From contig NC_091999.1 in the NCBI RefSeq assembly GCF_044704955.1, forward strand, positions 26,846,001 through 26,910,000: DNA of 64,000 nucleotides, in the 5' to 3' direction. The notes beneath the pieces are model-generated. The model searched no databases and was not told where the DNA came from. It was given only the letters and a program-made list of their open reading frames with translations. The stretch comes from Pristiophorus japonicus. Lineage: Eukaryota. The translations under genes were made by a program, and so were the position numbers. This document shows, piece after piece, positions 28,423 through 63,330 of this stretch (positions within the stretch are counted from its first letter, which is position 1; every line of letters starts with the position of its first letter).

Positions 28423-29321
28423 TTATTTAATACATTTAAAAATTACAGTAAAGGGATATTTCACCACATTCTTCAACTCCTCTCTGAATTTCGACTGGGT
28501 CACGGCATAAATACATGTGTTGGTGCAGCAACTCAGGAGCTGAAGCATAAATCCAATTTCCTGTACATATTGAGGTAGATATACAGGAATAAAGTTTAAC
28601 AAATACAATCGTTCAACCACAGAATATAAGAGAAACACTGCCCATAGCAGGATAAAATTGCCGGATATAACAAACAGTAAAATGATGGATTTCCTTCGCT
28701 TCTCCATCTCTGGGTCACTGGGAATCTCCCCACTGCTGTGGGCCCTGAGTCTCCTGCGGGCTCTGCTCGATACTAAAACCTGTCTGACAGTTAAAGTATT
28801 GAGCAGAAGGATCAGAACAAATGGAATAAACGGTGTTATAATATAATGAAGGAATTCAATTACTGCCCATGATAGTGACTCAGAGACTTCCCATGTAACA
28901 AAACAAAACCAGCTACCATTGGAAATCTGATACATACCTCCATACATAAAGTACCAGAAAGTGTTCTTTACACAGAATAGCGCACTCAGTGTTCCCATAG
29001 CCACAGTCGCCGTTTTCTCGGTGCAATATTTGGTTTTGAGCTTCTGACAACAAATGGCTATACATCGATCAAAGGTAAAAGCAACTGTGAACCAGACGGA
29101 ACAGTCAGTGACTGCGTAAAGCAGGATGGCATGGATATTACACACTTTGCTCTTCCACTTGAAATCAAACGCGGTTGAATAAAGAATAGGAATCTGCCTG
29201 GATATCAGGTCGAGGATAACGACCAGTAGATCTGCCGCTGCCATTGCCACCAGGTAACGGCTGACACACTTGGAGAGACCGCACCTTCCTCGAGACAGGA
29301 TCATTATCGTCACTAAGTTCA
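28423..29321 (-). CDS. GPR139-like class A GPCR, exon 2
   Basis: 899-nt exon after a TTTCTTGCAG acceptor; NLVTIMILSRGRCGLSKC, LVAMAAADLL, TVAFTFDRCIAIC, NTCIY; seven-TM pattern; stop at 28423-28425. Confidence 0.92.
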
Positions 29322-29426
29322 CTGCAAGAAAGAGAAAAACAGGGAATTTATATTTCAGATTGAGAGCAACATCAGCTGTCTCAAAGAATTATGTGTGAAA
29401 TGTGTCAGGATTAAATGAACTATACA

Positions 29427-46340: not shown

Positions 46341-46396
46341 TTTATTGTTTTTTATTTAAGAACTGAAATGCAATCGAGACATTCTCATTGACAAGA
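46341..46396 (-). pseudogene. IGHM: Displaced end of the IgM secretory tailpiece (S-C-Q-stop) with polyA signals
   Basis: TCT TGT CAA TGA at 46396-46385; AATAAA at 46356-46351 and 46346-46341; matches the shark IgM tail ..MDT.NSCQ*. Confidence 0.8.
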
Positions 46397-47626
46397 ATGA
46401 CTAAGAAAGCAATAAAGGAAGGAAAGATAGATTACAAAGGTAAACTTGCGCAAAACATGAAAACGGATAGTAAAAGCTTTTACCGATATGTAAAACGGAA
46501 AAGAGTGACTAAAGTAAATGTTGGTCCCTTAGAAGATGAGAAAGGGGATTTAATAATGGGAAATGTAGAAATTGCTGAGAGCTTAAACAATTATTTTGCT
46601 TCGGTCTTCACAGTGGAAGACACAAAAACCATGCCAGAAATTGCTGGTCAAAGGAATGTGGGAAGGGAGGACCTTGAGACAATCACTATCACTAGGGGGG
46701 TAGTGCTGGACAGGCTAATGGGACTCAAGGTAGAAAAGTCCCCCGGTCCTGATGAAATGCATCGCAGGGATAAAGAGATGGCAGAAGTTATAGCAGATGC
46801 ATTCGTTAAAATCCACCAAAACTCTCTGGACTCTGGGGAGGTACCAGCGGATTGGAAAGCAGCTAATGTAACACCTCTGTTTAAAAAAGAGGGCAGGCAA
46901 AAGGCAGGTAACTAAAGGCCGGTTAGTTTAACATCTGTAGTGGGGAAAATGCTTGAAACTATCATTAAGGAAGAAAGAGCGGGATATCTAGATTGGAATA
47001 GTGCAATCAAGCAGACGCAGCATGGATTCATGAAGGGGAAATCATGTTTAACTAATTTACTGGAATTCTTTGAGGATATAACGAGCATGGTGGATACAGG
47101 TGTACCGATGGATGTGCTGTATTCAGATTTTCAAAAGGCATTCGATTAGGTGCCACACAAAAGGTTACTGCAGAAGATAAAGGCACGTGGAGTCAGAGGA
47201 AAAGTATTAGCATGGATAGAGAATTGGCTGGCAAACAGAAAGCAGAGAATCGCGATAAATGGGTCCTTTTTGGGTTGGAAATCGGTGGTTAGTGGTGTGC
47301 CACAGGGATCGGGGCTGGGACTACAACTGTTTACAATATATATAGATGACCTGGAAGAGGGGACAGAGTATAGTGTAACAAAATTTGCAGATGACACAAA
47401 GATTAGTGGGAAAACGGGTTGTGCAGAGGACACAGAGAGGCTGCAAAGAAATTTAGATTGGTTAGAGAATGGGATAAGATTTGGCAGATGGAATACAATG
47501 TCGGAAAGTGTGAGGTCATGCATCTTGAGGGAAAAAAAAACAGCAAAAGGGAACATTGTTTGAATGGGGAGAAATTATAACATGCTGCGATGCAGAGGGA
47601 CCTGGGGGTCCTTGTGCATGAAACTC
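46397..47626 (+). mobile_element. CR1 LINE, left part (5'-truncated ORF2)
   Basis: KSPGPDEMH, QHGFMKGKSCLTNL, SGVPQGS, KFADDTKI; ends at RDLGVLVHET. Confidence 0.93.
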
Positions 47627-47802
47627 TTTTAGGAGCAAACAAAAAACATTAACCCGTGCCCCCCGATCTGGGGGAAACACCAACATTTACAAGGTTTATT
47701 TTTGGCACAAAAATATATTTTTTCTCCAAGTGCCCCCTATAAAAGGGGAGGGGGACACTAAAAGCACCGGCAATTAAAACAAATTAACTTAAAAATATGA
47801 AA

Positions 47803-50800
47803 TCAAGTTAAAATTTGGTTGCCGGGCGTGATGATGCACTCCAGTCCCTCCGGTGCCCATCTCTTGCAGAAGGCCACGAGCGTACCGGTGGACACCGCAT
47901 GCTCCATCTCCAGGGACACCCTTGACCGGATGTATGCGCGGAAGAGAGGCAGGCAGTCTGGCTGAACGACCCCCTCGATCGCCTGCTGCCTGGACCGGCT
48001 GAGGGCCCCCTTGGCCGTGCCCAGGAGCAGTCCTACGAGGAGGCCTTCGGACCTACCCGCTCCCCTCCGCACAGGGTGCCCGAAGATCAGGAGTGTGGGA
48101 CTGAAGTGCAGCCAGAATTTCAGGAGCAGCTCCTTTAAATAACAAAACAGGGGCAGCAACCTCGTGCACTCAATAAAAACATGGAACACGGACTCTTCCA
48201 GACCGCAGAAATTGCAGGCGGCCTGGGAGCCCGTGAACCGGCTTAAAAATTTATTGCACGGCACTGCTCCGTGCATCACCCTCCAGGCCAAGTCCCCGGC
48301 AAATAGTGGGAGGACCCCTGCGTAGAGTGCCCTCCATCGGGGACCCCCGCCTCCTCTGGACGGCAAGATGGTACGCCATGGCGTGTCCAGACGGCAGGCA
48401 AGGATGGCAAAGTTGAGAGTGTGCAGCAGCAGCCCGTACAGGAAACCCCTCCGCGCAGAACTGAAAGGCACGGAGGGGATTTCCACGAGGCGGCTCAAGT
48501 TGTGAGGCGTCGGCCCCCGAGGGAGGTTCCGGGGTTTGGCGCCGATGAGGAATTCCGTCCGGACGGGGGTCAGTTCGGATGGGATCTCCCCGCGTGCTTG
48601 AGCCTCCTCGATGCACCTAATGGTGTCGGGGCCCAGAGCTGTTTTTATCGACTCGATGGCATCAGCCGCGCGGCGGACGTTGGCGGAATTTAGGCGCCGC
48701 GCCAGCATGTCTGGCACCATCCAACCCGCTCCTCCGCCATCGAGCAGGTCCCTGACCCTGGTCACCTCACCAGCCAAAGCACGCTCATCCGATCGCCACC
48801 TAAAACCTCGGTCGTGGAGGTACGGATTCCCGAGCAGCGGCTCCTGCAGGACGGCCGCCACTCCAGCCGGTGGAGAGCTCCGCTTGGTGGAGACTTTGTT
48901 CCAGACCCTGATGAGTTCCTTGTAAAAGACAGGCAGCTCCCGGAGGGCGGTCCTGACGACCCCCACACTCACAAACAGGAGCTGCGTGTCGTAGTTGCGG
49001 CCGTGCTGCTGGCGGAAGAAAGACATCGCCAGAGCACACCACCTGGGAGGGGGGTCAACGTAAAGGTATCTCTGCAGGGTCTGAAGATGGAAAGTCGCGA
49101 GCTGGGCGCTGACGCACACCAACAACTGACCGCCCTCCCCAAGCGGGAGACTCAAGACCGCGGCAGAGACCCAGTGCTTCCTGTTGTTCCAGAAGAAGTC
49201 CACCAGCTTCTTCTGTATCTTGGCGACAAACTCAGGTGGAGGGGTCAAAGTGACCAGCCGGTACCACAACATGGCGGCCACAAGCTGGTTTATGACTAGC
49301 GCTCGACCCCTGCAGGACAGCACTCGGAGCAGTCCTGTCCAGCGCCCTAGGCGAGCGGCGACCTTGGCCCCCAGCTCTTGCCAGTTCGCCACCCACACTT
49401 CCTCGTCGGGGCTAAGGTAGACTCCCAGATTGAGGAGATGGGTCGTGCTCCAGGCAAAAGGCGTGAGCTCCTCCGGCAGGGAGTCCACCCGCCACTGACC
49501 CACCAGGAGTCCGGAACATTTCTCCCAGTTGATTCTGGCGGAGGATGCGGCTGAGTAAATCTCCTGGCACTCACACATCCTCCGCAGGTCAGCGGGATCC
49601 TCTACCGTGAGGAGCACGTCATCGGCGTAAGCCGAGAGGACGACCTCCACGCCCGGCCCTTGCAGAGCCAGTCCCGTCAACCTCGTCCGCAGGAGGCGCA
49701 GGAAAGTCTGCACGCAGACGGCATATAAATGGCCGGACATGGGGCATCCCTGGCGCACCCCTCTCCCAAAGCGAAGGGGCGCCGTCAAGGACCCGTTAAC
49801 ATTAATCAGACACTCTGCGGCGGCGTATAAAAGTCGGATCCAGGCGACGAAATGCATCCCAAACCCGAAAGCGCGCAGAGTTCCAAGCAGATAGTCATCA
49901 TTCACCCTGTCGAACGCCTTCTCTTGGTCGAGGGATAGGAAGGCGACCGGCAGACCAGCCTCCTGGGGAATAATGGATGAGGTCCCGGACCAGATGGATG
50001 TTATCGTGGATTGTCCGGCCCGGGACCGTGTAGGACTGGTCGGGTTGGATCATGTGGTCCAGCACGGCACCAAGGCGAGCAGACATCGCCCTGGCGATGA
50101 TTTTGTAGTCCGTGCTGAGGAGGGATACTGGGCGCCAGATATTAAGGAGGCGGAGATCGCCCTTCTTATGGAGCAGGACAATGACTGCCCTGCGCCAACA
50201 GAGGGGCATCTCCCCGGTCACCAGACTTTCCCACAGGACCCGCGCGTAGTCGCCCCCCAGGACTTCCCAGAACGCCCTGTGGAGCTCCACGGTCAGCCCG
50301 TCCAGACCCGGGGATATTCACCTCGAGAGCCGGTCGAGGGCGCCGGTCAGCTCCGCCAGGATTAGCGGAGCTTCCAGATTTTCGGCGCCCTCCGGGCTGA
50401 CCTTCGGCAGGTCCTCCCACAAAACTCTATGCACTTCTTCGCTGGACGGCTCCAGAGAGAACAGGGCCCCGTAATATTCAATGGCCCTGTTGTTGACGTC
50501 CTCCGGATCCGAGACGAGAGAGCCGTCGTCGGCCAGCAGCGTCAAGAGCTGCTTACGGACACTCTGTCTTTTTTCCAGCGAGTAGAAGAAAGGCGGAGCC
50601 GCGGTCCAGATCCCGCAGGAACTGGATCTGTGACCTCACGAACACGTCTCGGGACCCTACGAGCTGCAGGTCCTTCAGCGTGTCCTTCTTCGCTTCGTAC
50701 ACCGTCCGCAGGGCCGGGTCCCCGACGACTTGCTCCAGGTCGAGCACCTCCTTTTCTAGATGCCCGACCCTGGCCGCCCGCCTCTTGGTCGACCCCCTCG

Positions 50801-51691
50801 CGTACTCTTGATAGAAGACGCGGACGTGAGCCTTGCCCACGTCCCACCATAGCCTCAAGGAGGGGACGCCCCCCTGCTTCCTTCTCCAGTCGGCCCAGAA
50901 ACGACGGAACGAGTCCTGGAACCGCACGTCCTCCAGCAGCTGGTTGTTAAAATGCCAGTACGCGGACCCCGTCCTCGCGCGGAGCGAAGCGAGCTCTGCC
51001 CGCAGCAGGTGGTGGTCCAAACAGGGTACCTGCCGCATGGAGGCTGCCGGGACGCAGGAAACGTACGCCCAAGACAGGTAAAGGCGGTCGACTGTGGACC
51101 ATCCAACTCCAGGCCTCACCCAAGTAAAGGCGCTGGAGTCTGGGTGGAGATTTCGCCAGACGTCCACCAAGTCGAAGGACCCGACCAGGTCCCACAACTT
51201 CTCCATCGCCGTCATGCTCTGCGGGGCACCGGAGGGGTCCCTGGCCTCGAGGGTGCAGTTAAAATCCCCCCCGAGGACAATGCAGTCGCCGACGTCGACG
51301 GAGCCAAGAAGAGCGGACACCTCTTCGAAGAAGCGCGTTTGCTGCGGGCCGGGCTGAGGGTCGTACACGTTCACGAGGTGGAGCGGCACGCCCCCAGGCG
51401 AACCGTTCCGTGCAGCAAGCGGCCTGGCACGGGCTCCTCGACCCCCAAGATCTCCGGCTGAAAATGCGGGGCCAGCAAGATGGCCACCCCACTAGAAGTG
51501 GCAGTGAGGTGGCTCATGCGGACCTCTCCTTGCCATTCCAGGATCCACGTGGCTTCGTCTCCCGGAACGGTGTGGGTTTCTTGCAGGAAGCACGCTGCAT
51601 ATTTCCCCTCCTGCAGGAGCGAAAAATTGTTAAATCTACGTCGTGCCTCTCTGCTGCAGTTGATGTTGAGGCTGGCTATGGTTATCTTCAT
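47803..51691 (-). pseudogene. Tx1 ORF2 (APE endonuclease, RT, Zn finger), frameshifted
   Basis: MKITIASLNIN, FLQETH, GGDFNC, WRPVSLLSTDYKI, GVRQGCP, SAYADDV, CNFCGLEESVFHVFIEC; split across five ORFs. Confidence 0.93.
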
Positions 51692-51693
51692 GA

Positions 51694-53820
51694 CTAGAGC
51701 ATAGTGCAACCTCTACCTAACCTATTGTGGGGGGTGGGAGTGGAGTCGTTTGTTGACCTCCACTCCTTCAGCAGCCCAGTGAGGAACCTTTTGAGCCGGC
51801 GCAGCTCAAGGCCTTGCGCCTTTGATAAGGGCCCGCCCACGGCCATGGTTTTAGCGGCGGCGCGGACGGAAGCGATGAGCAGCCCCGGCTCAGACCATCT
51901 TTCTCGGGCCAGATGGGTTCGGTTGCGGCGACCCTGGCGCTGGACCAAAAAGTCCCGGAGTTCCTCGACGGGAATGAGGGGGGATTCAGCGGCGGTCACG
52001 AGGAGATCTACCGCCTCACTGGCGATGGACTCGAGATCTTCACCCGCGTCCTCCACCGAGTCCCCGTCCTCCTCCGGGAGGTCGCCGCTAGCAGCCGGCT
52101 CGTCGACCGCACGAGGTATGGCAAACGGCCCGGCCGCTCCATCTGGCCCTGGCTCTGCCCCAATCCCACCCCAGGATCGTCGGCAGAGGAGTCCCCACTG
52201 AGCTCTTTTAAAATTGGTACTGGGTCGGGAACCAACAGCGGAAGGGTTTCCTCCTCCGCCCCAGGAACCGCGGAACACGGAGAGACCTGGTCAAAGTAAT
52301 GTTCCAGGTCCTCCAAGTACCCCAGCTCCAAAGTAGGTGGCGAAGGTTGTTGTTCTTCCCCCTCCCCGCCGCCACCCCCCGGCCCAGCGTGTACAGAATC
52401 GTTAAAATTAATCCATTTTCAGTTTCTTCCGGGCCGAGCGACTCTAGGGGGCAGATAATTAATATCTGGGCGGGCTCAGGTTCGGACTGTTCGGCCCCGC
52501 CTGCCTCAGTCCCGGGGACGCTCGACTCGGCGGCTACGCATTCCACCGCTGGCCCGTCGCCCCCCTCGTCAGGCAGATCATTCACACCATCCCCGGGAGG
52601 CAGAGGCCGGGCAGCCTCGACTGCCTCACCCTCCCCGGGGACAGATTCCTCACGCCTGCAGCGCAATTTGGGGGCGCTGGTGGGGGACGCGGGACACGCG
52701 GCGGGCACCGACTCCTCCGCGGAGGGATGTTGTTCCCCCTCCGCCTCATTGGAGCGGCGCCTCCTTTTGTTCCTGGGAGGGCGTGGAGGCAGGGAGACCT
52801 CCATGTCTGCCGAGGCCTCCCGCTCCACCCACCCCCTTTTTCTTTTCTTGCCCGCGCCCGAGCGCCTCTGTGATACTGGTCAAGGGCTCAGGCACGGGCT
52901 CAGGGCATCCCGCGCTCGCCGGTGACGGGGTTGGCCCGAGCGCGGTAAACAGATTGTCTGGCGCACTGTGGGGTCCCGCCTCTAGATGTTTCGCCTTCTT
53001 CCGTGCCTTCTTTCCGGTCGGACGCTGTCCCTCCCCCCCCGCCGGAGGCCGTGAAAACAATGGCCTCCGACGATGCCCGCGCACCTACGGCTCCCGGCAC
53101 GTGGACGCTACTAGGGGGAGGTGTGGCGGCGGCGCAAGCCTTGGCCACCCTCGGTGGTTTGGCGGCTTTGGAGGCGGGGCAGTTCTTGCGAACGTGCCCC
53201 ACATCACTGCAGGCATGGCACCGCAACCCGTTCGACGTCCAGAAGACGTGGTAGGCAGTCCAATCGTGCACCACATTGAAATTGCCCTCCGTCGTCTCCT
53301 CCCGCGCCAGCCGGACAAAGAGCTGGCGGCGGAAGGAGAACACATGGCGCAGGCTGTTCTCCCTGAGGCCGAGCGGTATGGGGTTGATCCCCGACCTTAC
53401 CTCCCCCATTTGGTGTAGATGAGGGAGGAGGAGCTCAGCGGGATCAAAGGGCGGGACGTTTGAAATGATGACCCTCTGCGCGGTGGCCTCGAGAGGGTCC
53501 ACCGGCAGGAACACCCCGCCCACCATGAGCCCCTTTTCAATGGCCAGGGACATCGCCCGCTCTGACCCCAGGAAGAACACGGCCTTCCCAGACATCTTGG
53601 AGACTTCGACAATGGCCGAGGGGCCGACTACCCCAGCCATCGCCCGCACGCACTCCTCAATGCTCATTGCGGGTTTAGTGTAGCCCTTGACCCCGTGTTT
53701 TTTAGTTATCAGTCTGAATGGTGGCAGGGCAGAAGGAGGCGCAGGAGGTGCCGTGGATGTGGATGCCACCTGCGCATAAGTCCTAGCTGGCCCTGCCACC
53801 GGCGTGGATGGGGTCGCCAT
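51694..53820 (-). pseudogene. Tx1 ORF1 (gag-like RNA-binding protein), frameshifted
   Basis: KHGVK..SIEECVRAMAGVVGPSAI..SKMSGKAVFFL..ISNVPPF..CHACSDVGHVRKNCP. Confidence 0.9.
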
Positions 53821-54764
53821 CACGGGGTCCCTTTCAGGGCTACACCCACCCCAAAGTCACATGCCTTAATTGTCTTAAGTGGCCTCGTTTAAATATTTAA
53901 CAGCGGGAGCTCTGAAAGAGGCACTCCTCTCCCCTAGTTGGCATTTGGGGAGGGGCCTTGCTCCCTCTGCTCAGTTGTCTAAATTGTTCTTGTCTTTTTT
54001 TTTTCCAATTGGGAGGAAGGGCTCTCAGAGAGAGAGGGGAGAGACAGAGAGAGAGATAGAGTGAGGGGTTGTGGGAAAGAGGGAGGCTGCAAGGGCAGAT
54101 CTCCCCTCACAGTAATGGGTGGGTGCACTCCCCAGATGGCAAACAAAACAGTCTTTGGGGTTGACTTCGGGTGGGGCAGAAGATGTCTTCACCTGGGGCA
54201 GCTGGAGCCACACAGGTACACACTCCCAACGATGTTAATTAGGGTGATTTAGTTTCTTCAGCCTGGTAGCTCCAGCTATCCCAGGCTAGGCAATGGGGGA
54301 GGGGTGCTTCAGTGGTGTGTGGGCCTAGCTGTAGTCAAGACCCCCACATACACTTCCACACACACACACACCCCCCGCGATGTTCTGGCCCTCGATTGGT
54401 CATCTTTCCTCCCCCCACCGATACAACAAAGTCTTTTTGGTGAATGCACCAAAACACACCCACCTTTGGCTGAAGAAGTCTTTCCCTCCTTCCACATTGG
54501 CAAGTTGTTGTTCTTTTTCCCCCCTCTCTCCAAATCTTTGTTGAAATAATGAAGGTGTTGCAGTCTTCTGCTCTCCTCCTCTCACTCTAGATGAATGGTA
54601 ATGAAGCCCCTTCCTTCCTCCAGTTCCTGGGCTGGTCTCAGGGCTCACTCCAGGCCTTCCAGACGGGAGCTAAAGCAGGGAGTTCCTTCTCTCACAGCAG
54701 CTAGGCTCCAAGTGCATAGGCCACGCCTCCAAAGCTCCACCATTGGTCCTTGTGCATGAAACTC

Positions 54765-54951
54765 TTTTTGGGAGTAAACAAAAAACATTAAACCGTAACC
54801 TCCCCCCGATCTGGGGGAAATACCACACATTTACAGGCCCTTTTATTTTTTTGTGGTATTTTTTGGGGGGGGTTTTTGGGCACAGAAACATATTTTTTTC
54901 CAAGTGCCCCCTATAAAAGGGGAGGGGGACACTAAAAGCACCGGCAATTAA
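54765..54951 (-). mobile_element. Second Tx1 insertion, 3'UTR only, at the same target
   Basis: Diverged copy of 47627-~47780; shares CCAAGTGCCCCCTATAAAAGGGGAGGGGGACACTAAAAGCACCGGCAATTAA. Confidence 0.92.
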
Positions 54952-55648
54952 TGTTAGTTTGCAGGTGCAACAGGTAATCAGGAAGGCGAATGGAATGTTG
55001 ACCTTCATTGCCAGAGAGATGGAGTACAATAGCAGGGAGGTCCTTCTGCAACTGTATAGGGTATTGGTGAGGCCGCACCTGGAGTACTGCGTGCAGTTTT
55101 GGTCACCTTACTTAAGGAAGGATATACTAGCTTTGGAGGGGGTACAGAGACGATTCACGAGGCTGATTCAGGAGATGAGAGGGTTACCTTATGATGATAG
55201 ACTGAGTAGACTGGGTCTTTACTCGTTGAAATTCAGAAGGATGAGGGATGATCGATAGAAACATTTAAAACAATGAAAGGCATAGACAAAATAGAGGCAG
55301 AGAGGTTGTTTCCACTGGTCGGGGAGACTAGAACTAGGGGGCCCAGCCTCAAAATACGGGGGAGCCAATTTAAAACTCAGTTGAGAAGGAATTTCTTCTC
55401 CCACAGAGTTGTGAATCTGTGTAATTTACTGCAAAGGGGAGGAATTGAGGATAGCTCATTGAATGTATTCAATTCACAGAAAGATAGATTTTTAACCAAT
55501 AAGGGAGTTAAGGGTTATGGGGAGCGGGCGGGTAAGTGGAGCTGAGTCCACGGCCAGATCAGCCATGATCTTGTTGAATGGCGGAGCAGGCTCGAGATGC
55601 AAGATGCCCTACTTCTGTTACTAATTCTTATGTTCTTATGTTCTTATG
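54952..55648 (+). mobile_element. CR1 LINE, right part to the 3' tail
   Basis: Resumes at VSLQVQQVIRKANG, directly after the interrupted motif; ends in (TTCTTATG)n. Confidence 0.93.
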
Positions 55649-56011
55649 AAGGTGTCCATCAGAACAAGGGAAATGCTTTACCACTGGATTTATTGACGGT
55701 TCTGTTGGTGATTATCAATGGGATCGCTTCATGTCCCACCACACAGGAGTGAGAGGCGCCGCTCGCCCACTCCTCGGCTGCAATGGATAGCAGGCTGTAC
55801 ATGAAGAAGGAGCTGCTGCCGTTCTCCGCCATCAACTCGGTGTTCATGGAGTTGCCGGAATCCACGGGCTTGTCATTGACGGTCCATTTGATGAAGATCT
55901 CTCGGGGGGAGAAACCTCTCACTAAGCAGGTGAGGCTGACCAACCTCTGAGCAGAGACTTCTTCTGCTGAGGGCAGGAGGACAGACACGGCCGCTTCCCG
56001 CGGATCTTTCG
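55649..56011 (-). pseudogene. IGHM: IgM Cmu4 exon (55682-56011) plus disrupted secretory tail
   Basis: CTACAG acceptor; [50 protein letters not shown]; tail ISLVLMDT is out of frame and cut by CR1. Confidence 0.93.
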
Positions 56012-56929
56012 CTGTAGAACAGTTACAACAAAGGCCAATGAACTGGTTAGTTCCAGAGACAATGGGGGAATTTCAACCCAATACAGCGGGCGCATTTTGG
56101 GCGTGGTGGTTGTTAAATTGGTAAAAATTAGAATCCCTACCTCAACTCGCTCACTTCCGGTTGTAATATTATATTTCAGTAATATATTTAAATGAGACTT
56201 GAATCCTCTATTTTAACCACCATTTGGTGTTTAACAGTCGCTGGTCCGGTTTGACACACTTTGTAAATCTCAGCAGTTACAGCAAGGTGGAGATTGCTGC
56301 TCCCAGGTGGTAATTGCCCTTACACCTACCTCCTGAATCCAGGGTCCCTGCCTAACCCACCCCCCGCGATCCGCGACCTCCTCACTCGGCTTCCAATCCT
56401 CCCGTTTTCACTGGTGGCCTGTGAGATCAACGCCCACAACTCGCCTTCCTCATTTAAATTCAGCCAATTTCCGGTGGTTAGATGTGAGAGAAATGGACAC
56501 TGCGTTTAATTTTTTACGCTTTTCCTTTTCCCCTCTGTTGCCTCTCTGGTTTTCCATCCCTTATCCGAGGGAATGTAATCTTTCTCTCTGAAATCTTGAA
56601 GCATTGGACTGGAAAATGACAAAGAATTTAATGCACAGAACGATGAGATTTGGCTAACTGGTCTATGCCGGTGTTTATGATCCACACAAGCCTCCTACGA
56701 GCCCACTTCATCTAAACCTAATAATATACCCTTCTATTTTTTTCTCGCTCATGGACTTATCCAGTTTCCCCTAAAATACATAATGTCAGGTCCCAGAGTG
56801 CTGAGTTGGTGGATTTACCAACCTGAATGATCAGAGTAGCCATTAAACACTTTATATAATCAATTGGCCCTTGCACACGCATCGAAATTGTCGCAGTGTC
56901 TCAATTATTGCAACAATTTCCCCGCTCAC

Positions 56930-57237
56930 CCTTTTCCTTGTGGATGGAATCTCTGAGAGGAGTCGACATATCCTGATGGCTCACCACGCAGTAGAACCTA
57001 TCCCCACTCAGCCAGTCTTCTGTCGAGATGTTTAAGTTGCTGATCACACTGTTGGGATCCTCTCCGGGTTGGACGGCAATCTCTGATTTCAAAGTCTCGT
57101 TTTTTCGGGTCCAGGTCAGGGTGAGCCCGTAAGGAACGTCAGACACGACGTACGTTAAGGTCACCGTGGCCTCCAGTAAAACCTGTTCCAGTGACGGTGG
57201 GCGAAGAGTGATTTTTAATCGCTGCATGGGACATCCA
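56930..57237 (-). pseudogene. IGHM: IgM Cmu3 exon
   Basis: [49 protein letters not shown]; 308 nt (frameshift near 57218); first Ig Cys->Tyr. Confidence 0.92.
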
Positions 57238-58536
57238 CTGCGAAACAGGAATGAAAGTAAGGAAAAGCCGCATCTTCAGAATCAGGACACCAATAATTAG
57301 CCTTAACTCTTTCAAGGGGAATAACTCACTTTTGAGATATCAACCTCTCGCTATTGCTTGAACACTTTCGTTATGGAAGGGCAATGAATTGGCAACGATT
57401 CTGGGAGGTCTGTAATATTTCCTGTGTATTTGAGCCAGAGCCACCTGTAATGGGCTGTGAAGCAAATACCTGGCCTACAATGGGAATACATTGGGACACA
57501 ATTGTGATAGGCACTGAATGGCGCTCTCCCTGCAATCCCTTGCTCCTTTACGCCCGTCTATAGATTCTTGCACCCAAACGCATCTCCACTGCGTATAATA
57601 GCTGATGCCCGATAATCCCCAAGTTCAAGAGGTCGACACCAGCATTATACTGGTTCAAAACCAGTGTCAAATTAATTGCAGGATTTATGGGACAACAGGA
57701 AACAAAGTTAAGTTTCTAGTCTTTTGCTGCTATTTTTGTTGCGATGAAAATGTGCAGGAACCAGTCACATCCCACGTCAGAGGAGAAGTGCAAGGTCCGG
57801 AGAATGGAGTTGCAAGGAATCTTTTGTGGTGGGGCATCATTTGTAATGAGGTGAGGTAGTTTGTTAATATCTGTAATTACTGAACATTTATCATGTCTGG
57901 TGAGAGAGATTCAGAAAGCACTATGACCTCAGGGCATTAATATCAACATAGGAATAGGAGAAGGCCATTCAGCCCATCCATCCTGTCCCGCCATCCAGTT
58001 AGATCATGGCTGATCAACACTCAACACCATCTTCACGCCTTGGCTATGTAACCCATGATAACCTTGCCGAACAAAAATCTATCAATCTCAGTTTTCAACT
58101 TTTCAATAGAAAGCAAGTGTCAGCAGCTTTTGGGGAGGGAAATCCCGACTTGCACTATTCTTCCTTTGAGAAATTCCTTTCTGACATCACCTGTGCACGG
58201 CCTAACTCTAATGTTAAGGTTCTGCTACTTGTTCTGGACTCTCCCATCAAACTAAATCAATGTTTCTATATCAACTCGATCAATTCCATTTATCAACTTA
58301 AACACGTCAATTGGATCATCTCTTAACGTTCCATACTCGCCACCTGATCATTTTACATTATTAGCCCCGGTATAATTCGGGTAAACATGCAGTTTAGCAC
58401 CTCCACGTATATCCTTCCTCAGGTGCAGAGCCCAGAATTGGGCTCAGTACTCTGAATAGGGTAGATGCCCATTCTTGCAGTGGGTTCCTGGACAGTTAGC
58501 AGTAAAGGATTCCAGACTCCTATTGCCGTTGCGTAT

Positions 58537-61500
58537 ATAGAAACATAGAAACATAGAAAATAGGTGCAGGAGTAGGCCATTCGGCCCTTCTAGCCTGCAC
58601 CGCCATTCAATGAGTTCATGGCTGAACATTCAACGTCAGTACCCCATTCCTGCTTTCTCGCCATACCCCTTGATCCCCCTAGCAGTAAGGACCTCATCTA
58701 ACTCCTTTTTGAATATATTTAGTGAATTGGCCTCAACAACTTTCTGTGGTAGAGAATTCCACAGGTTCACCACTCTCTGGGTGAAGAAGTTCCTCCGCAT
58801 CTCGGTCCTAAATGGCTTACCCCTTATCCTTAGACTGTGACCCCTGGTTCTGGACTTCCCCAACATTGGGAACATTCTTCCTGCATCTAACCTGTCTAAC
58901 CCCGTCAGAATTTTATATGTTTCTATGAGGTCCCCTCTCATTCTTCTGAACTCCAGTGAATACAAGCCCAGTTGATCCAGTCTTTCTTGATAGGTCAGTC
59001 CCGCCATCCCGGGAATCAGTCTGGTGAACCTTCGCTGCACTCCCTCAATAGCAAGAATGTCCTTCCTCAGGTTAGGAGACCAAAACTGTACACAATACTC
59101 CAGGTGTGGCCTCACCAATGCCCTGTACAACTGTAGCAACACCTCCCTGCCCCTGTACTCAAATCCCCTTGCTATGAAGGCCAACATGCCATTTGCTTTC
59201 TTAACCGCCTGCTGCACCTGCATGCCAACCTTCAATGACTGATGTACCATGACACCCAGGTCTCTTTGCACCTCCCCTTTTCCTAATCTGTCACCATTCA
59301 GATAATAGTCTGTCTCTCTGTTTTTACCACCAAAGTGGATAACCTCACATTTATCCACATTATACTTCATCTGCCATGCATTTGCCCATTCACCTAACCT
59401 ATCCAAGTCGCTCTGCAGCCTCACAGCATCCTCCTCGCAGCTCACACTGCCACCCAACTTAGTGTCATCCGCAAACTTGGAGATACTACACTCAATCCCC
59501 TCATCTAAATCATTAATCTACAGTGTAAACAGCTGGGGCCCCAGCACAGAACCCTGCGGTACCCCACTAGTCACTGCCTGCCATTCTGAAAAGTACCCAT
59601 TTACTCCTACTCTTTGCTTCCTGTCTGACAACCAGTTCTCAATCCATGTCAGTACACTACCCCCAATCCCATGTGCTCTAACTTTGCACATCAATCTCTT
59701 GTGTGGGACCTTGTCGAACGCCTTCTGAAAGTCCAAATATACCACATCAACTGGTTCTCCCTTATCCACTCTACTGGAAACATCCTCAAAAAATTCCAGA
59801 AGATTTGTCAAGCATGATTTCCCTTTCACAAATCCATGCTGACTTGGACCTATCATGTCACCTCTTTCCAAATGCACTGCTATGACATCCTTAATAATTG
59901 ATTCCATCATTTTACCCACTACCGATGTCAGGCTGACCGGTCTATAATTCCCTGTTTTCTCTCTCCCTCCTTTTTTAAAAAGTGGGGTTACATTGGCTAC
60001 CCTCCACTCCATAGGAACTGATCCAGAGTCAATGGAATGTTGGAAAATGACTGTCAACACATCCACTATTTCCAAGGCCACCTCCTTAAGTACTCTGGGA
60101 TGCAGTCCATCAGGCCCTGGGGATTTATCGGCCTTCAATCCCATCAATTTCCCCAACACAATTTCCCGGCTAATAAGGATTTCCCTCAGTTCCTCCTCCT
60201 TACTAGACCCCCCGACCCCTTTTATAACCGGAAGGTTGTTCGTGTCCTCCTTCGTGAATACCGAACCAAAGTACTTGTTCAATTGGTCCGCCATTTCTTT
60301 GTTCCCCGTTATGACTTCCCCTGATTCTGACTGCAGGGGACCTACGTTTGTCTTTACTAACCTTTTTCTCTTTACATATCTATAGAAACTTTTGCAATCC
60401 GTCTTAATGTTCCCTGCAAGCTTCTTCTCATACTCCATTTTCCCTGCCCTAATCAAACCCTTTGTCCTCCTCTGCTGAGTTCTAAATTTCTCCCAGTCCC
60501 CAGGTTCGCTGCTATTTCTGGCCAATTTGTATGCCACTTCCTTGGCTTTAATACTATCCCTGATTTCCCTTGATAGCCACGGTTGAGCCACCTTCCCTTT
60601 TTTATTTCTATGCCAGACAGGAATGTACAATTGTTGTAGTTCATCCATGCGGTCTCTAAATGTCTGCCATTGCCCATCCACAGTCAACCCCTTAAGTATC
60701 ATTCGCCAATCCATCTCAGCCAATTCACGCCTCATACCTTCAAAGTTAGCCTTCTTTAAGTTCTGGACCATGGTCTCTGAATTAACTGTTTCATTCTCCA
60801 TCCTAATGCAGAATTCCACCATATTATGGTCACTCTTCCCCAAGGGGCCTCGCACAACGAGATTGCTAATTAATCCTTTCTCATTACATAACACCCAGTC
60901 TAAGATGGCCTCCCCCCTAGTTGGTTCCTCGACATATTGGTCTAAAAAACCATCCCTTATGCACTCCAGAAAATCCTCCTCCACCGTATTGCTTCCAGTT
61001 TGGTTAGCCCAATCTATGTGCATATTAAAGTCACCCATTATAACTGCTGCACCTTTATTGCACGCACCCCTAATTTCCTGTTTGATGCCCTCCCCAACAT
61101 CACTACTACTGTTTGGAGGTCTGTACACAACTCCCACTAACGTTTTTTGCCCTTTGGTGTTCTGCAGCTCTACCCATATAGATTCCACATCATCCAAGCT
61201 AATGTCCTTCCTAACTATTGCCTTAATCTCCTCCTTAACCAGCAATGCTACCCCACCTCCTTTTCCTTTTATTCTATCCTTCCTGAATGTTGAATACCCC
61301 TGGATGTTGAGTTCCCAGCCCTGCTCATCCTGGAGCCACGTCTCCGTAATCCCAATCACATCATATTTGTTAACATCTATTTGCACAGTTAATTCATCCA
61401 CCTTATTGCGGATACTCCTTGCATTAAGACACAAAGCCTTTAGGCTTGTTTTTTTAACACCCTCTGTCCTTTTAGAATTTTGCTGTACAATGGCCCTTTT

Positions 61501-61918
61501 TGTTCTTTGCCTTGGGTTTCTCTGCCCTCCACTTTTCCTCATCTCCTTTCTGTCTTTTGTTTTTGCCTCCTTTTTGTTTCCCTCTATCTCCCTGCATTGG
61601 TTCCCATCCCCCTGCCATATTAGTTTAACTCCTCCCCAACAGCACTAGCAAACACTCCCCCGAGGACATTGGTTCCGATTCTGCCCAGGTGCAGACCGTC
61701 CGGATTGTACTGGTCCCACCTCCCCCAGAACCGGTTCCAATGCCCCAGTAATTTGAATCCCTCCCTGCTGCACCATTGCTCAAGCCACGTATTCATCTGA
61801 GCTATCCTGCGATTCCTACTCTGACTAGCACGTGGCACTGGTAGCAATCCCGAGATTACTACTTTTGAGGTCCTACTTTTTAATTTAGCTCCTAGCTCCT
61901 TAAATTCATTTCGTAGGA
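58537..61918 (-). mobile_element. Young CR1 LINE in the Cmu2-Cmu3 intron; ORF2 broken by one nonsense codon; 5'-truncated in ORF1
   Basis: ORFs 59518-61542 and 58636-59457 are in the same frame, separated by TAG in FTL*INDLD; (TTTCTATG)n tail. Confidence 0.96.
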
Positions 61919-62455: not shown

Positions 62456-62589
62456 TTGTATCGCAAGAATACACAAACTGCATGATTGGGAATTAGGAAT
62501 ATTCCTCTGTTTCTACTAATTTCAATCAAAGTCCTGACTGAGATCAGCGCTCAGAATGGTCTGGAACCTCCCTGGATTGTGCCTCTTAC

Positions 62590-62910
62590 CCTGAGATCTG
62601 CTGAAGTTACGGCTTTGTGTGCCCCCTTCATGAGTGACTTGGCAGGTGTAGACCGAGCCGGTGAACCATTCCCTGGCGGGGAGTGTCAGCCGACTGGCCG
62701 TCAAAACGTTTCCGTTCATCTCAAAGGCGGGAGAGGTGATGAAGCCCGAATCCAGGAGTTGTCCACTCTTCAGCCAATTCATGGTCAGTGACTTTGGCCT
62801 TAATTCGATGATTGAACACATGGCGCTTGCATATCTGCTGCTGATGATTTGTTCAGTGGAACATGGCAAGAGGAGAACAATTGGAGGAACAATGATCCGT
62901 TCACGACGTT
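62590..62910 (-). pseudogene. IGHM: IgM Cmu2 exon
   Basis: CSIIELRPKSLTMNWLK..SGFITSP..SRLTLPAREWF..YTCQVTH..QSRN; donor G|GTAAGA; expected acceptor reads TG. Confidence 0.9.
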
Positions 62911-63034
62911 CACGAGAAGGCATTTTATTGACATTGCTTGCAAAATAAATGAGTAAGAAATGCAAAGTGTCCTTATATTTTAACAAGTTCTTTGCTGTCA
63001 GATTCACACCAACCTGGCATTTGCAGAGAGCAAA

Positions 63035-63330
63035 ATTGTGCACAGTATACTCAGTGTAATATGCAGACCAGAACTGTGCATAATATTCTAAGTGCGATAT
63101 GGGGATCAGAACCATGCACAGTATTCTAAGTGTGATATGGAGACCAGAGCTGTGCATACTATTCTAAGTACGATATGGAGACCAGAACTTTACACAGTAT
63201 TCTAAGTATGAGATGGAAACCAGAATTGTAAACAATATTCTAAATGTGATAAGGAAACTAGAACTGTGCACAGTATTCTAAGTATTATATGGAGACCAGA
63301 ACTATGCACAGTACTCTAAGTGTTGTCTAA
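63035..63330. repeat. 38-bp minisatellite derived from CR1 RT sequence
   Basis: Unit GAGACCAGAACTGTGCACAGTATTCTAAGTGTGATATG, ~7-8 copies; reverse strand encodes HLEY.AQFWS. Confidence 0.8.

Follow-up and report, generated by a model that had tools for sequence, protein, structure and literature searches.

A Tx1-type retrotransposon that very probably integrates at one fixed site within CR1 elements of a shark genome

In the 64-kb window (the whole stretch of shark DNA that was analysed), one CR1 copy is interrupted by two members of a second LINE family, both inserted at the same phosphodiester bond. This arrangement raises the question of whether one LINE can serve as the specific target of another. 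The reading that we consider very probable is that a Tx1-type family with APE and RT domains integrates sequence-specifically, and in antisense orientation, at a single fixed position within the sequence that encodes the RT of a CR1 subfamily.

The host CR1 lies on the plus strand and is divided into a left part (46394..47606), which is 5′-truncated, lacks the APE domain and contains RT-coding sequence with stops, and a right part (54952..55648), which terminates in the octamer tail (GTTCTTAT)3 at about 55621–55648. In tblastn comparisons with the full CR1 ORF2 located at 59521–61542 on the minus strand, positions 46394–47338 corresponded to amino acids 358–674, positions 47467–47628 corresponded to the next segment, and positions 54926–55533, to the right of the insertion, matched the same ORF. 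The host CR1 is co-linear with the full CR1 over the insertion, for ∼1.2 kb on the left and 0.7 kb on the right, and is 50–72% identical to the full APE+RT ORF2 elsewhere in the window. To the right of the short second copy, CR1 resumes with 5–7 bp missing, in line with the initial annotation, which had described such a resumption. The similarity to CR1-type ORF2 and the short octamer repeat at the 3′ end indicate, at the level of sequence, that the target is CR1, the dominant LINE in sharks (PMC8455134).

The long element (47627–54744, minus strand) is 7,118 bp in length, contains ORF1, APE, RT and zf-RVT, and splits the CR1 within the RDLGVLVHET codons, where an antisense element of ∼7.1 kb had been annotated. 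Its 5′ UTR (53824..54744, minus strand; ∼920 bp) adjoins the right copy of the target-site duplication with its 5′ end. The ORF1 region (51694..53823, minus strand) is composed of an intact N-terminal piece of 307 aa (52900–53823) and two more open pieces (52208–52828 and 51694–52278). In the N-terminal piece there are two RRM-like domains and a CCHC knuckle (aa 194–231), and the best fold matches of its predicted model, which is of moderate quality (pLDDT about 65–84 in the two domains), were all tandem-RRM proteins (probability 0.9–0.99, E about 1e-3). Relatives of ORF1 occur in catshark and sturgeon, and JGI metagenome proteins are 59–72% identical to it. ORF2 (47803..51709, minus strand) encodes the APE endonuclease, RT and a C-terminal zf-RVT in four frame segments, with three frameshifts near 51392, 50590 and 49960 that were located by tblastn of relatives; its pieces are co-linear with relatives of 1,000–1,100 aa. 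The APE pieces (51371–51709 and 50553–51389) match L1-EN and ORF2p (E 5e-10) and contain the GDFN and DH motifs, and the Pfam search found RVT_1 and zf-RVT in ORF2, with RVT_1 in the two pieces that follow APE. The nearest RT relatives are turtle, sturgeon and fish proteins, the closest of which (P0001) is 65% identical. Metagenome scans gave no match to a 24-nt block of the 3′ UTR and no relative of a 700-aa ORF2 piece. The 3′ UTR itself (47627..47802, minus strand) ends in a terminal 4 A only (TTTT on the plus strand). It includes a 59-nt block (47719–47777) that shares 98% identity with the short copy and for which folding predicts a hairpin in each of the two copies; a structural signal in this hairpin was considered and rejected, as it folds no better than shuffled sequences (z −0.8 to −1.4).

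Among solved proteins, the element resembles L1 more closely than it does R2 or other clades: the RT matches L1 ORF2p with an E value of 2e-17, versus 3e-8 to 5e-5 for R2 proteins. Human L1 (ORF2p, 8sxt and 8uw3; L1-EN, 1vyb) provides the best solved matches for both APE (E 5e-10) and RT (2e-17) and has the same domain order. The shark element differs from human L1 in its lack of Transposase_22, which the Pfam search did not find in ORF1, in its A tail of 4–5 nt, and in its fixed site GAAAC|AC or CTC|AA in place of TTTT|AA. The long poly(A) and TTTT|AA-like nick of L1 proper are thus both missing, and the initial annotation had correctly described the junction as not of the L1 kind. The predicted ORF1 fold, with RRM and CCHC modules, points to a type I ORF1p rather than the type II (Transposase_22) ORF1p of vertebrate L1. 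Type I ORF1p has been stated for Tx1-like elements of non-mammalian animals (PMC5203782), and in chondrichthyans Tx1-type elements have been reported but no full L1 elements (PMC8455134). The element is therefore consistent with membership of the L1 superclade, and its type I ORF1 agrees with Tx1; this placement fits the ORF1 type, the near-absent poly(A) and the non-TTTT/AA site, and is one by features rather than by an RT tree with named references. An atlas search returned only generic L1-like RVT_1/zf-RVT clusters, in which Tx1 and L1 are not separated. The L1-EN chimera with a Tx1L hairpin loop (2v0r) was also considered as a hint of Tx1, but it scores only slightly above native L1-EN, a gap too small to be used.

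The insertion is flanked by the direct repeat GGTCCTTGTGCATGAAACTC, which occupies 47607..47626 on the left, where it encodes the CR1 residues G-V-L-V-H-E-T, and 54745..54764 on the right. The two copies of this target-site duplication are identical at 20/20 positions, which bears out the perfect 20-bp repeat of the initial annotation, and the 20 nt upstream of each copy match at 4/20 positions only. The last 2–3 nt of the left duplication (CTC; TC corresponds to 47625–47626) may be part of the element tail and not of the target. This caveat, already attached to the repeat when it was first described, stands, and the nick is therefore placed after 47624 or after 47626. The insertion point is GAAAC|AC (or CTC|AA), and the primer strand ends in ...GAAAC or ...AACTC. 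Allowing ≤3 mismatches, the target 17-mer GTCCTTGTGCATGAAAC occurs three times in the window, versus 0.14 occurrences expected; the three matches are both repeat copies and an empty homologous site in another CR1 of the window (18596..18612, plus strand), which reads GTACTTTTGCATGAAAC, then ACAAAAGG. This is the variant empty site that had been placed at ∼18590–18625.

The second family copy (54765..54951, minus strand) directly follows the right duplication. It is a 5′-truncated fragment of 187 bp with the same orientation as the long element and the same 3′ junction, GAAACTC|TTTT in both, as the initial annotation had stated. It lacks a separate target-site duplication, and the 64-kb window yielded no other copy of the element beyond the long and short ones. 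When the short copy is aligned to 47627–47777, 137/150 columns show identity, with another 37 columns taken up by gaps, among them a 31-nt indel. The pair could in principle stem from a local rearrangement in which the left end (47607–47777) was duplicated 7 kb away, so that the 20 nt and the 187-bp copy have one origin. The perfect duplication is too weak an argument against this possibility, because the 20/20 repeat is not significantly better kept than the 91% identical tail (P = 0.16); the rearrangement is rejected on geometry instead. The start of the duplicated block would have to coincide exactly with the start of the duplication made by other insertions (see below), and its end would have to coincide exactly with the resumption of CR1, 5–7 bp past the nick. 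Moreover, the tails differ by the 31-nt indel and 13 substitutions, and the arrangement lacks any known mechanism. Of the alternatives to CR1 targeting that we weighed, this one, which the initial annotation had itself named as a way in which its reading might fail, is the least probable, with hardly any chance of being correct.

The two insertions of the window could also reflect self-targeting, in which the first element entered CR1 by chance and the second homed in on the first one's tail or junction (e.g. by 3′-end homology), so that CR1 is not the target. The second hit in the window is indeed not independent of the first, and with the short copy as the earlier arrival, the nick for the long copy was made beside a tail that was already there. 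In the opposite order, the short one landed with native CR1 downstream. Copies from elsewhere in the genome bear on this point. Logan contigs of the same species were available from two runs, both made on a single sample, which is possibly also the source of the assembly. All six back-joints listed (6/6) lead from the element, at 47630, 47827, 48002, 48006, 48078 and 48130, to CR1 positions 47608–47610, with 1–6 filler letters at the joints; the kind of joint is unlabelled in this listing, and 'from > to' was interpreted as 'goes back'. The CR1 joint at 47608–47610 corresponds to the start of the target-site duplication in the window. The genome therefore contains at least five, and probably six, further 5′-truncated copies. 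If joints were scattered over 600 bp of CR1, the chance of five further joints within the same 3-bp interval would be about (3/600)^5. Self-targeting gives no account of differently truncated copies whose duplications start at the same CR1 position, and we regard it as very unlikely.

The different truncation points also indicate independent events and rule out segmental duplicates of one event, another outcome that had been named as counting against site specificity. In total, there are independent insertions at the same target nucleotide, two in the window and at least five elsewhere, and the specificity for CR1 that the initial annotation had proposed from two hits is thereby supported. Contigs are not countable as copies, and contig depth was rejected as a measure of copy number. 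The final 80 bp of the tail (47627–47706) have about 50-fold less contig depth than ORF2, so the 3′ junction is poorly sampled outside the window. A constant junction between the element and CR1 at the 3′ side could by itself be produced by a carried-along flank: a master copy located in CR1 would give rise to read-through transcripts, and its daughters would take CR1 sequence to random sites. However, the 5′ ends of the truncated copies join the start of the CR1 duplication and not random DNA, a target-site duplication made of CR1 is not predicted by transduction, and the co-linear CR1 homology extends to both sides of the insertion in the window. We consider transduction highly improbable, even more so than self-targeting.

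In the mechanism that we propose for integration into CR1, the APE endonuclease would nick the sense strand of CR1 either directly behind ...GTGCATGAAAC or, 2 nt later, behind CTC. The freed 3′-OH would prime reverse transcription of an element RNA ending in 4–5 A, and a cut of the second strand about 15–20 bp upstream would generate a target-site duplication of 17–20 bp. The duplication, together with the untouched downstream CR1, would restore a complete target at the 5′ side of the element. A second element could therefore land there, which would give a head-to-tail pair. What we infer is the order in which the two elements inserted, the precise place of the nick (to within 2 nt), and a specificity that would be set by the endonuclease rather than by pairing between RNA and target.

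Target-specific families are known in the Tx1 clade, and some of them are aimed at other transposons (PMC4494074); the criterion for a target-specific LINE in that study is that >20% of flanks correspond to the target. Tx1-Mar, Tx1-9_AMi, Tx1-8_Crp and Tx1-4_AMi of crocodilians and Tx1L of Xenopus are likewise APE+RT Tx1 LINEs with a preference for fixed transposon positions, and their targets are Mariner, Harbinger, LTR elements and the piggyBac Tx1D, at which copies stack (PMC4494074). Compared by descriptions, the shark element differs from these in that its target is a non-LTR retrotransposon, entered in its RT-coding region and in antisense. Keno, Mutsu, Dewa, Kibi and Koshi are likewise target-specific Tx1 families with multicopy, safe landing sites (Kojima and Fujiwara 2004, as cited in PMC4494074 and PMC4640811), but their targets are snRNA, 5S rRNA and tRNA genes or microsatellites, whereas that of the shark element is a LINE. 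R1 and R2 of rDNA also have a multicopy target, which they enter at one nucleotide and where they leave 5′-truncated copies. R2, however, uses a restriction-like endonuclease, and its proteins match the shark RT only weakly, while R1 belongs to another APE clade. No published account of a CR1-targeting Tx1 was found in the literature. The CR1 site is a new target for the known Tx1 habit of target specificity, and would add another LINE to a range of targets that comprises RNA genes, microsatellites, DNA transposons and LTR elements.

Target-specific LINEs show how retrotransposons can multiply without hitting genes, and their endonucleases offer natural models of site-directed integration. Because CR1 accounts for about a fifth of shark genomes, a CR1-targeting element would also demonstrate that site specificity does not stop an element from becoming very abundant if its target is itself an abundant repeat. 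The broader picture of a LINE family living inside another LINE, with a conserved CR1 RT stretch that shark genomes hold in very many copies as its only landing site, head-to-tail arrays and an abundance of the order of the host subfamily, has in our judgement a somewhat better than even chance of being right. If it is, this would be the first target specificity of one non-LTR element for another, and it would provide a natural endonuclease with a recognition site of roughly 17–25 bp. For annotation, nested Tx1-in-CR1 arrays are to be expected genome-wide in this shark, and they inflate the apparent fragmentation of CR1.

Empty CR1 sites are common in the Logan contigs, 153 and 150 of which (in the two runs) continue as ACAAAAAGTTAG... 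behind 47624, and the commonest empty-site CR1 sequence is ...GAAAC|ACAAAAAG. The other CR1 subfamily reads GTCATGGTACATCAGTC... at the target sequence.

The Tx1-type element is inserted in a 5′-truncated CR1 copy on the plus strand, which extends from ~46394 to ~55621–55648 and ends in a (GTTCTTAT)3 tail. Sequence comparison within the window indicated that this host CR1 is co-linear, on either side of the insertion, with the full CR1 ORF2 at 59521–61542 (minus strand), and that the insertion point lies in the codons R-D-L-G-V-L-V-H-E-T. The two copies of the target-site duplication (47607–47626 and 54745–54764) both read GGTCCTTGTGCATGAAACTC, with an identity of 20/20 (the 20 nt upstream of each copy share just 4/20), and they enclose 7,118 bp (47627–54744) that are coding on the minus strand. 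Directly after the right duplication there is a short copy of the same family (54765–54951, 187 bp), which aligns with 47627–47777 of the long copy; 137 of the 150 aligned columns are identical, and gaps take up 37 columns, including one indel of 31 nt. Both copies begin with the junction GAAACTC/TTTT. The host CR1 picks up again at 54952/54953, reading GTTAGTTTGCAGG, and lacks 5–7 bp (ACAAAAA) at this right junction when compared with empty CR1 sites. The CR1-nested element proposed in the initial annotation is confirmed by the perfect duplication, the second copy with an identical 3′ junction and the co-linearity of CR1 on both sides. No further copies of the element were found within the 64-kb window.

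Because the two insertions in the window may be interdependent, Logan contigs of public runs were compared with the region 47027–48226. In the two Pristiophorus japonicus runs, which derive from one sample, 84,883 and 50,979 contigs aligned to this region (contigs are not equivalent to copies, so these numbers give no copy count), and both the CR1 half and the element half are highly repeated in each run. The back-joints listed return from the element to CR1 (47827 to 47608, 48002 to 47609, 48006 to 47609, 48078 to 47610, 48130 to 47609 and 47630 to 47610), a direction that is our reading of the joint table, which carries no label for the kind of joint. Each joint contains 1–6 letters of filler, and three of them occur in both runs. 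In all six of the back-joints listed, the landing point is constant within 3 bp and corresponds to the start of the duplication in the window (47607), exactly the pattern that a 5′-truncated copy with an adjoining target-site duplication should produce. Since the copies are truncated at different points, the insertions are independent events, and the chance that five further joints fall in one 3-bp stretch of 600 bp of CR1 is negligible (~(3/600)^5).

The differing truncation points also remove the possibility, raised in the initial annotation, that the CR1-flanked copies are segmental duplicates of one event. The same annotation considered that the short copy could have arisen by local duplication, with which the perfect 20-mer by itself is compatible (P = 0.16); however, this would require break points that match the insertion geometry, and it is removed by the landing of other copies at the same CR1 point. 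Self-targeting, in which the second element homed to an existing tail, leaves the CR1-made duplications of the other copies unexplained, and if CR1 flanks were simply carried along with the element, neither the 5′ junctions at the duplication start nor the ~2 kb of co-linear CR1 would be accounted for. The concern that genome-wide flanks might be heterogeneous is answered in part, in that all of the back-joints listed land on the CR1 duplication start. Contig depth at 47627–47706 is ~50 times below that of ORF2 or CR1, and therefore the 3′ junction of the element is poorly sampled beyond the window; tail length likely varies between copies, as in the window pair, which would break short contigs.

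These last 80 nt of the 3′ UTR (47627–47706) hold the 4-nt and 31-nt indels that separate the two copies in the window, and the indels and low depth suggest that the tail is hypervariable or falls into several subfamilies. In one contig per run, seven A connect CR1 at 47623 to position 47722 of the element, so that 98 nt of the tail are absent; these contigs may come from a rearranged copy or from a subfamily with a deleted tail. Within the 3′ UTR, a block of 59 nt (47719–47777 and 54893–54951) is 98% identical between the copies, and the remaining tail is 91% identical, with indels; a hairpin is predicted in this block (GUGUCCCCC...GGGGGCAC), with a fold energy that is not significant.

An empty site is located at 18596–18612 in another CR1 of the same subfamily as the host, and CR1 copies of a different subfamily read GTCATGGTACATCAGTC at the homologous place. 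Empty sites are also frequent in the Logan contigs of P. japonicus, in which 153 and 150 contigs from the two runs match CR1 to 47624 and continue with ACAAAAAGTTAGTATGCAGG. The commonest empty site among Logan contigs is GAAAC-AC-AAAAAG, and that of the related species is GAA-TC-CC-AAAAAG, so position 47625 is variable among CR1 copies. The TC at 47625–47626 may belong to the host or form the final two letters of the element, and the caution in the initial annotation about the terminal CTC of the duplication stands. In two related sharks (runs X5 and X9), the same CR1 subfamily is present, with the empty site CATGAA-TCCCAAAAAGTTAGTTTGCAGG. At least 10 more CR1 fragments from two or more subfamilies lie at 1–26600 and 58000–61600 of the window, and the ORF2 at 59521–61542 among them is nearly intact (APE and RT, 674 aa open).

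Because the element lies antisense to CR1, its cDNA corresponds to the plus strand, and the primer must then be the CR1 sense strand, ending in ...GTGCATGAAAC-3′ (47624) or ...AACTC-3′ (47626). A cut in the opposite strand 15–20 bp upstream would generate the duplication. The right duplication and the intact downstream CR1 would again form a complete site, at which a second element could land. In the simplest reading of the window pair, the long copy inserted first and the short copy followed, deleting a small part of the target; the opposite order is possible, as is a deletion that occurred later in a two-copy array. From other APE LINEs (PMC4494074 and references therein), we infer that the endonuclease would set target specificity.

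Target-specific families are a known feature of the Tx1 clade and insert in RNA genes (U2, U5, 5S and tRNA), microsatellites, satellites, LTR elements and DNA transposons (piggyBac, Mariner and Harbinger) (PMC4494074, PMC4640811). The element described here is probably target-specific as well, and these known targets do not include CR1. A full-text literature search, including a 2026 survey of CR1-group elements, found no Tx1 element or other LINE that targets CR1, in agreement with the initial annotation. The principle of target specificity is already known, and CR1 as the target is new.

On the minus strand, the long copy comprises a 5′ UTR of ~920 bp, an ORF1 region (53823–51694) with an intact N-terminal 307-aa piece that contains a CCHC knuckle, ORF2 (51709–47803) with APE endonuclease, RT and zf-RVT domains, and a 3′ UTR of 176 nt with four A at its end. 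ORF2 aligns co-linearly with relatives of 1,000–1,100 aa yet is broken by three frameshifts (near 51392, 50590 and 49960), so the copy, judged by its reading frames, is full-length or nearly so but dead. The best solved-structure match of the RT and APE pieces is human L1 ORF2p (E 2e-17 and 5e-10), with far weaker matches to R2 proteins. A domain search of ORF1 found no Transposase_22 domain. The ORF1 structure model, built from 16 relatives, predicts two domains with moderate confidence, and its best fold matches are without exception tandem-RRM proteins (SFPQ, Sex-lethal, PUF60 and IMP3). Type I ORF1p (RRM plus CCHC) is tied to Tx1-like elements of non-mammalian animals (PMC5203782). The assignment to the Tx1 clade is indirect and is drawn from features such as these.

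Among relatives of ORF2, the closest are an unnamed protein in ENA (65%) and proteins of sea turtles (45–50%), and ORF1 relatives were found in catshark and sturgeon. JGI metagenome contigs of 1.4–3.9 kb also code for ORF1 relatives (P0241–P0249, 59–72% identity) and are probably fish or shark host DNA; two metagenome scans for the element gave no match. The 3′ end of ORF2 is present at ~94% identity in the related shark of run X5, so the family either predates the split from P. japonicus or moved between the two. CR1 constitutes about a fifth of shark genomes, and Tx1-type elements, with no full L1, have been reported in chondrichthyans (PMC8455134).

Elsewhere in the window, a single-exon rhodopsin-type GPCR ORF (28423–29322, minus strand) is 98% identical to P. 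japonicus 'probable GPR139' and is one member of a very large expansion specific to sharks (2,366 matches at E ≤ 1e-20). This match places the window in a sawshark or a near relative, in keeping with the published repeat content given above. Immunoglobulin constant-domain exons lie directly to the right of the host CR1, within a set of constant-domain-like open frames on the minus strand at 55659–55988, 56901–57227 and 62522–63157, the third of which has a Pfam C1-set match. The frame at 55659–55988 ends in secretory-tail-like residues, and the CR1/Tx1 nest is located 11 nt past its end; an Ig heavy-chain cluster may thus harbour the nest, either in an intron or in its 3′ region.
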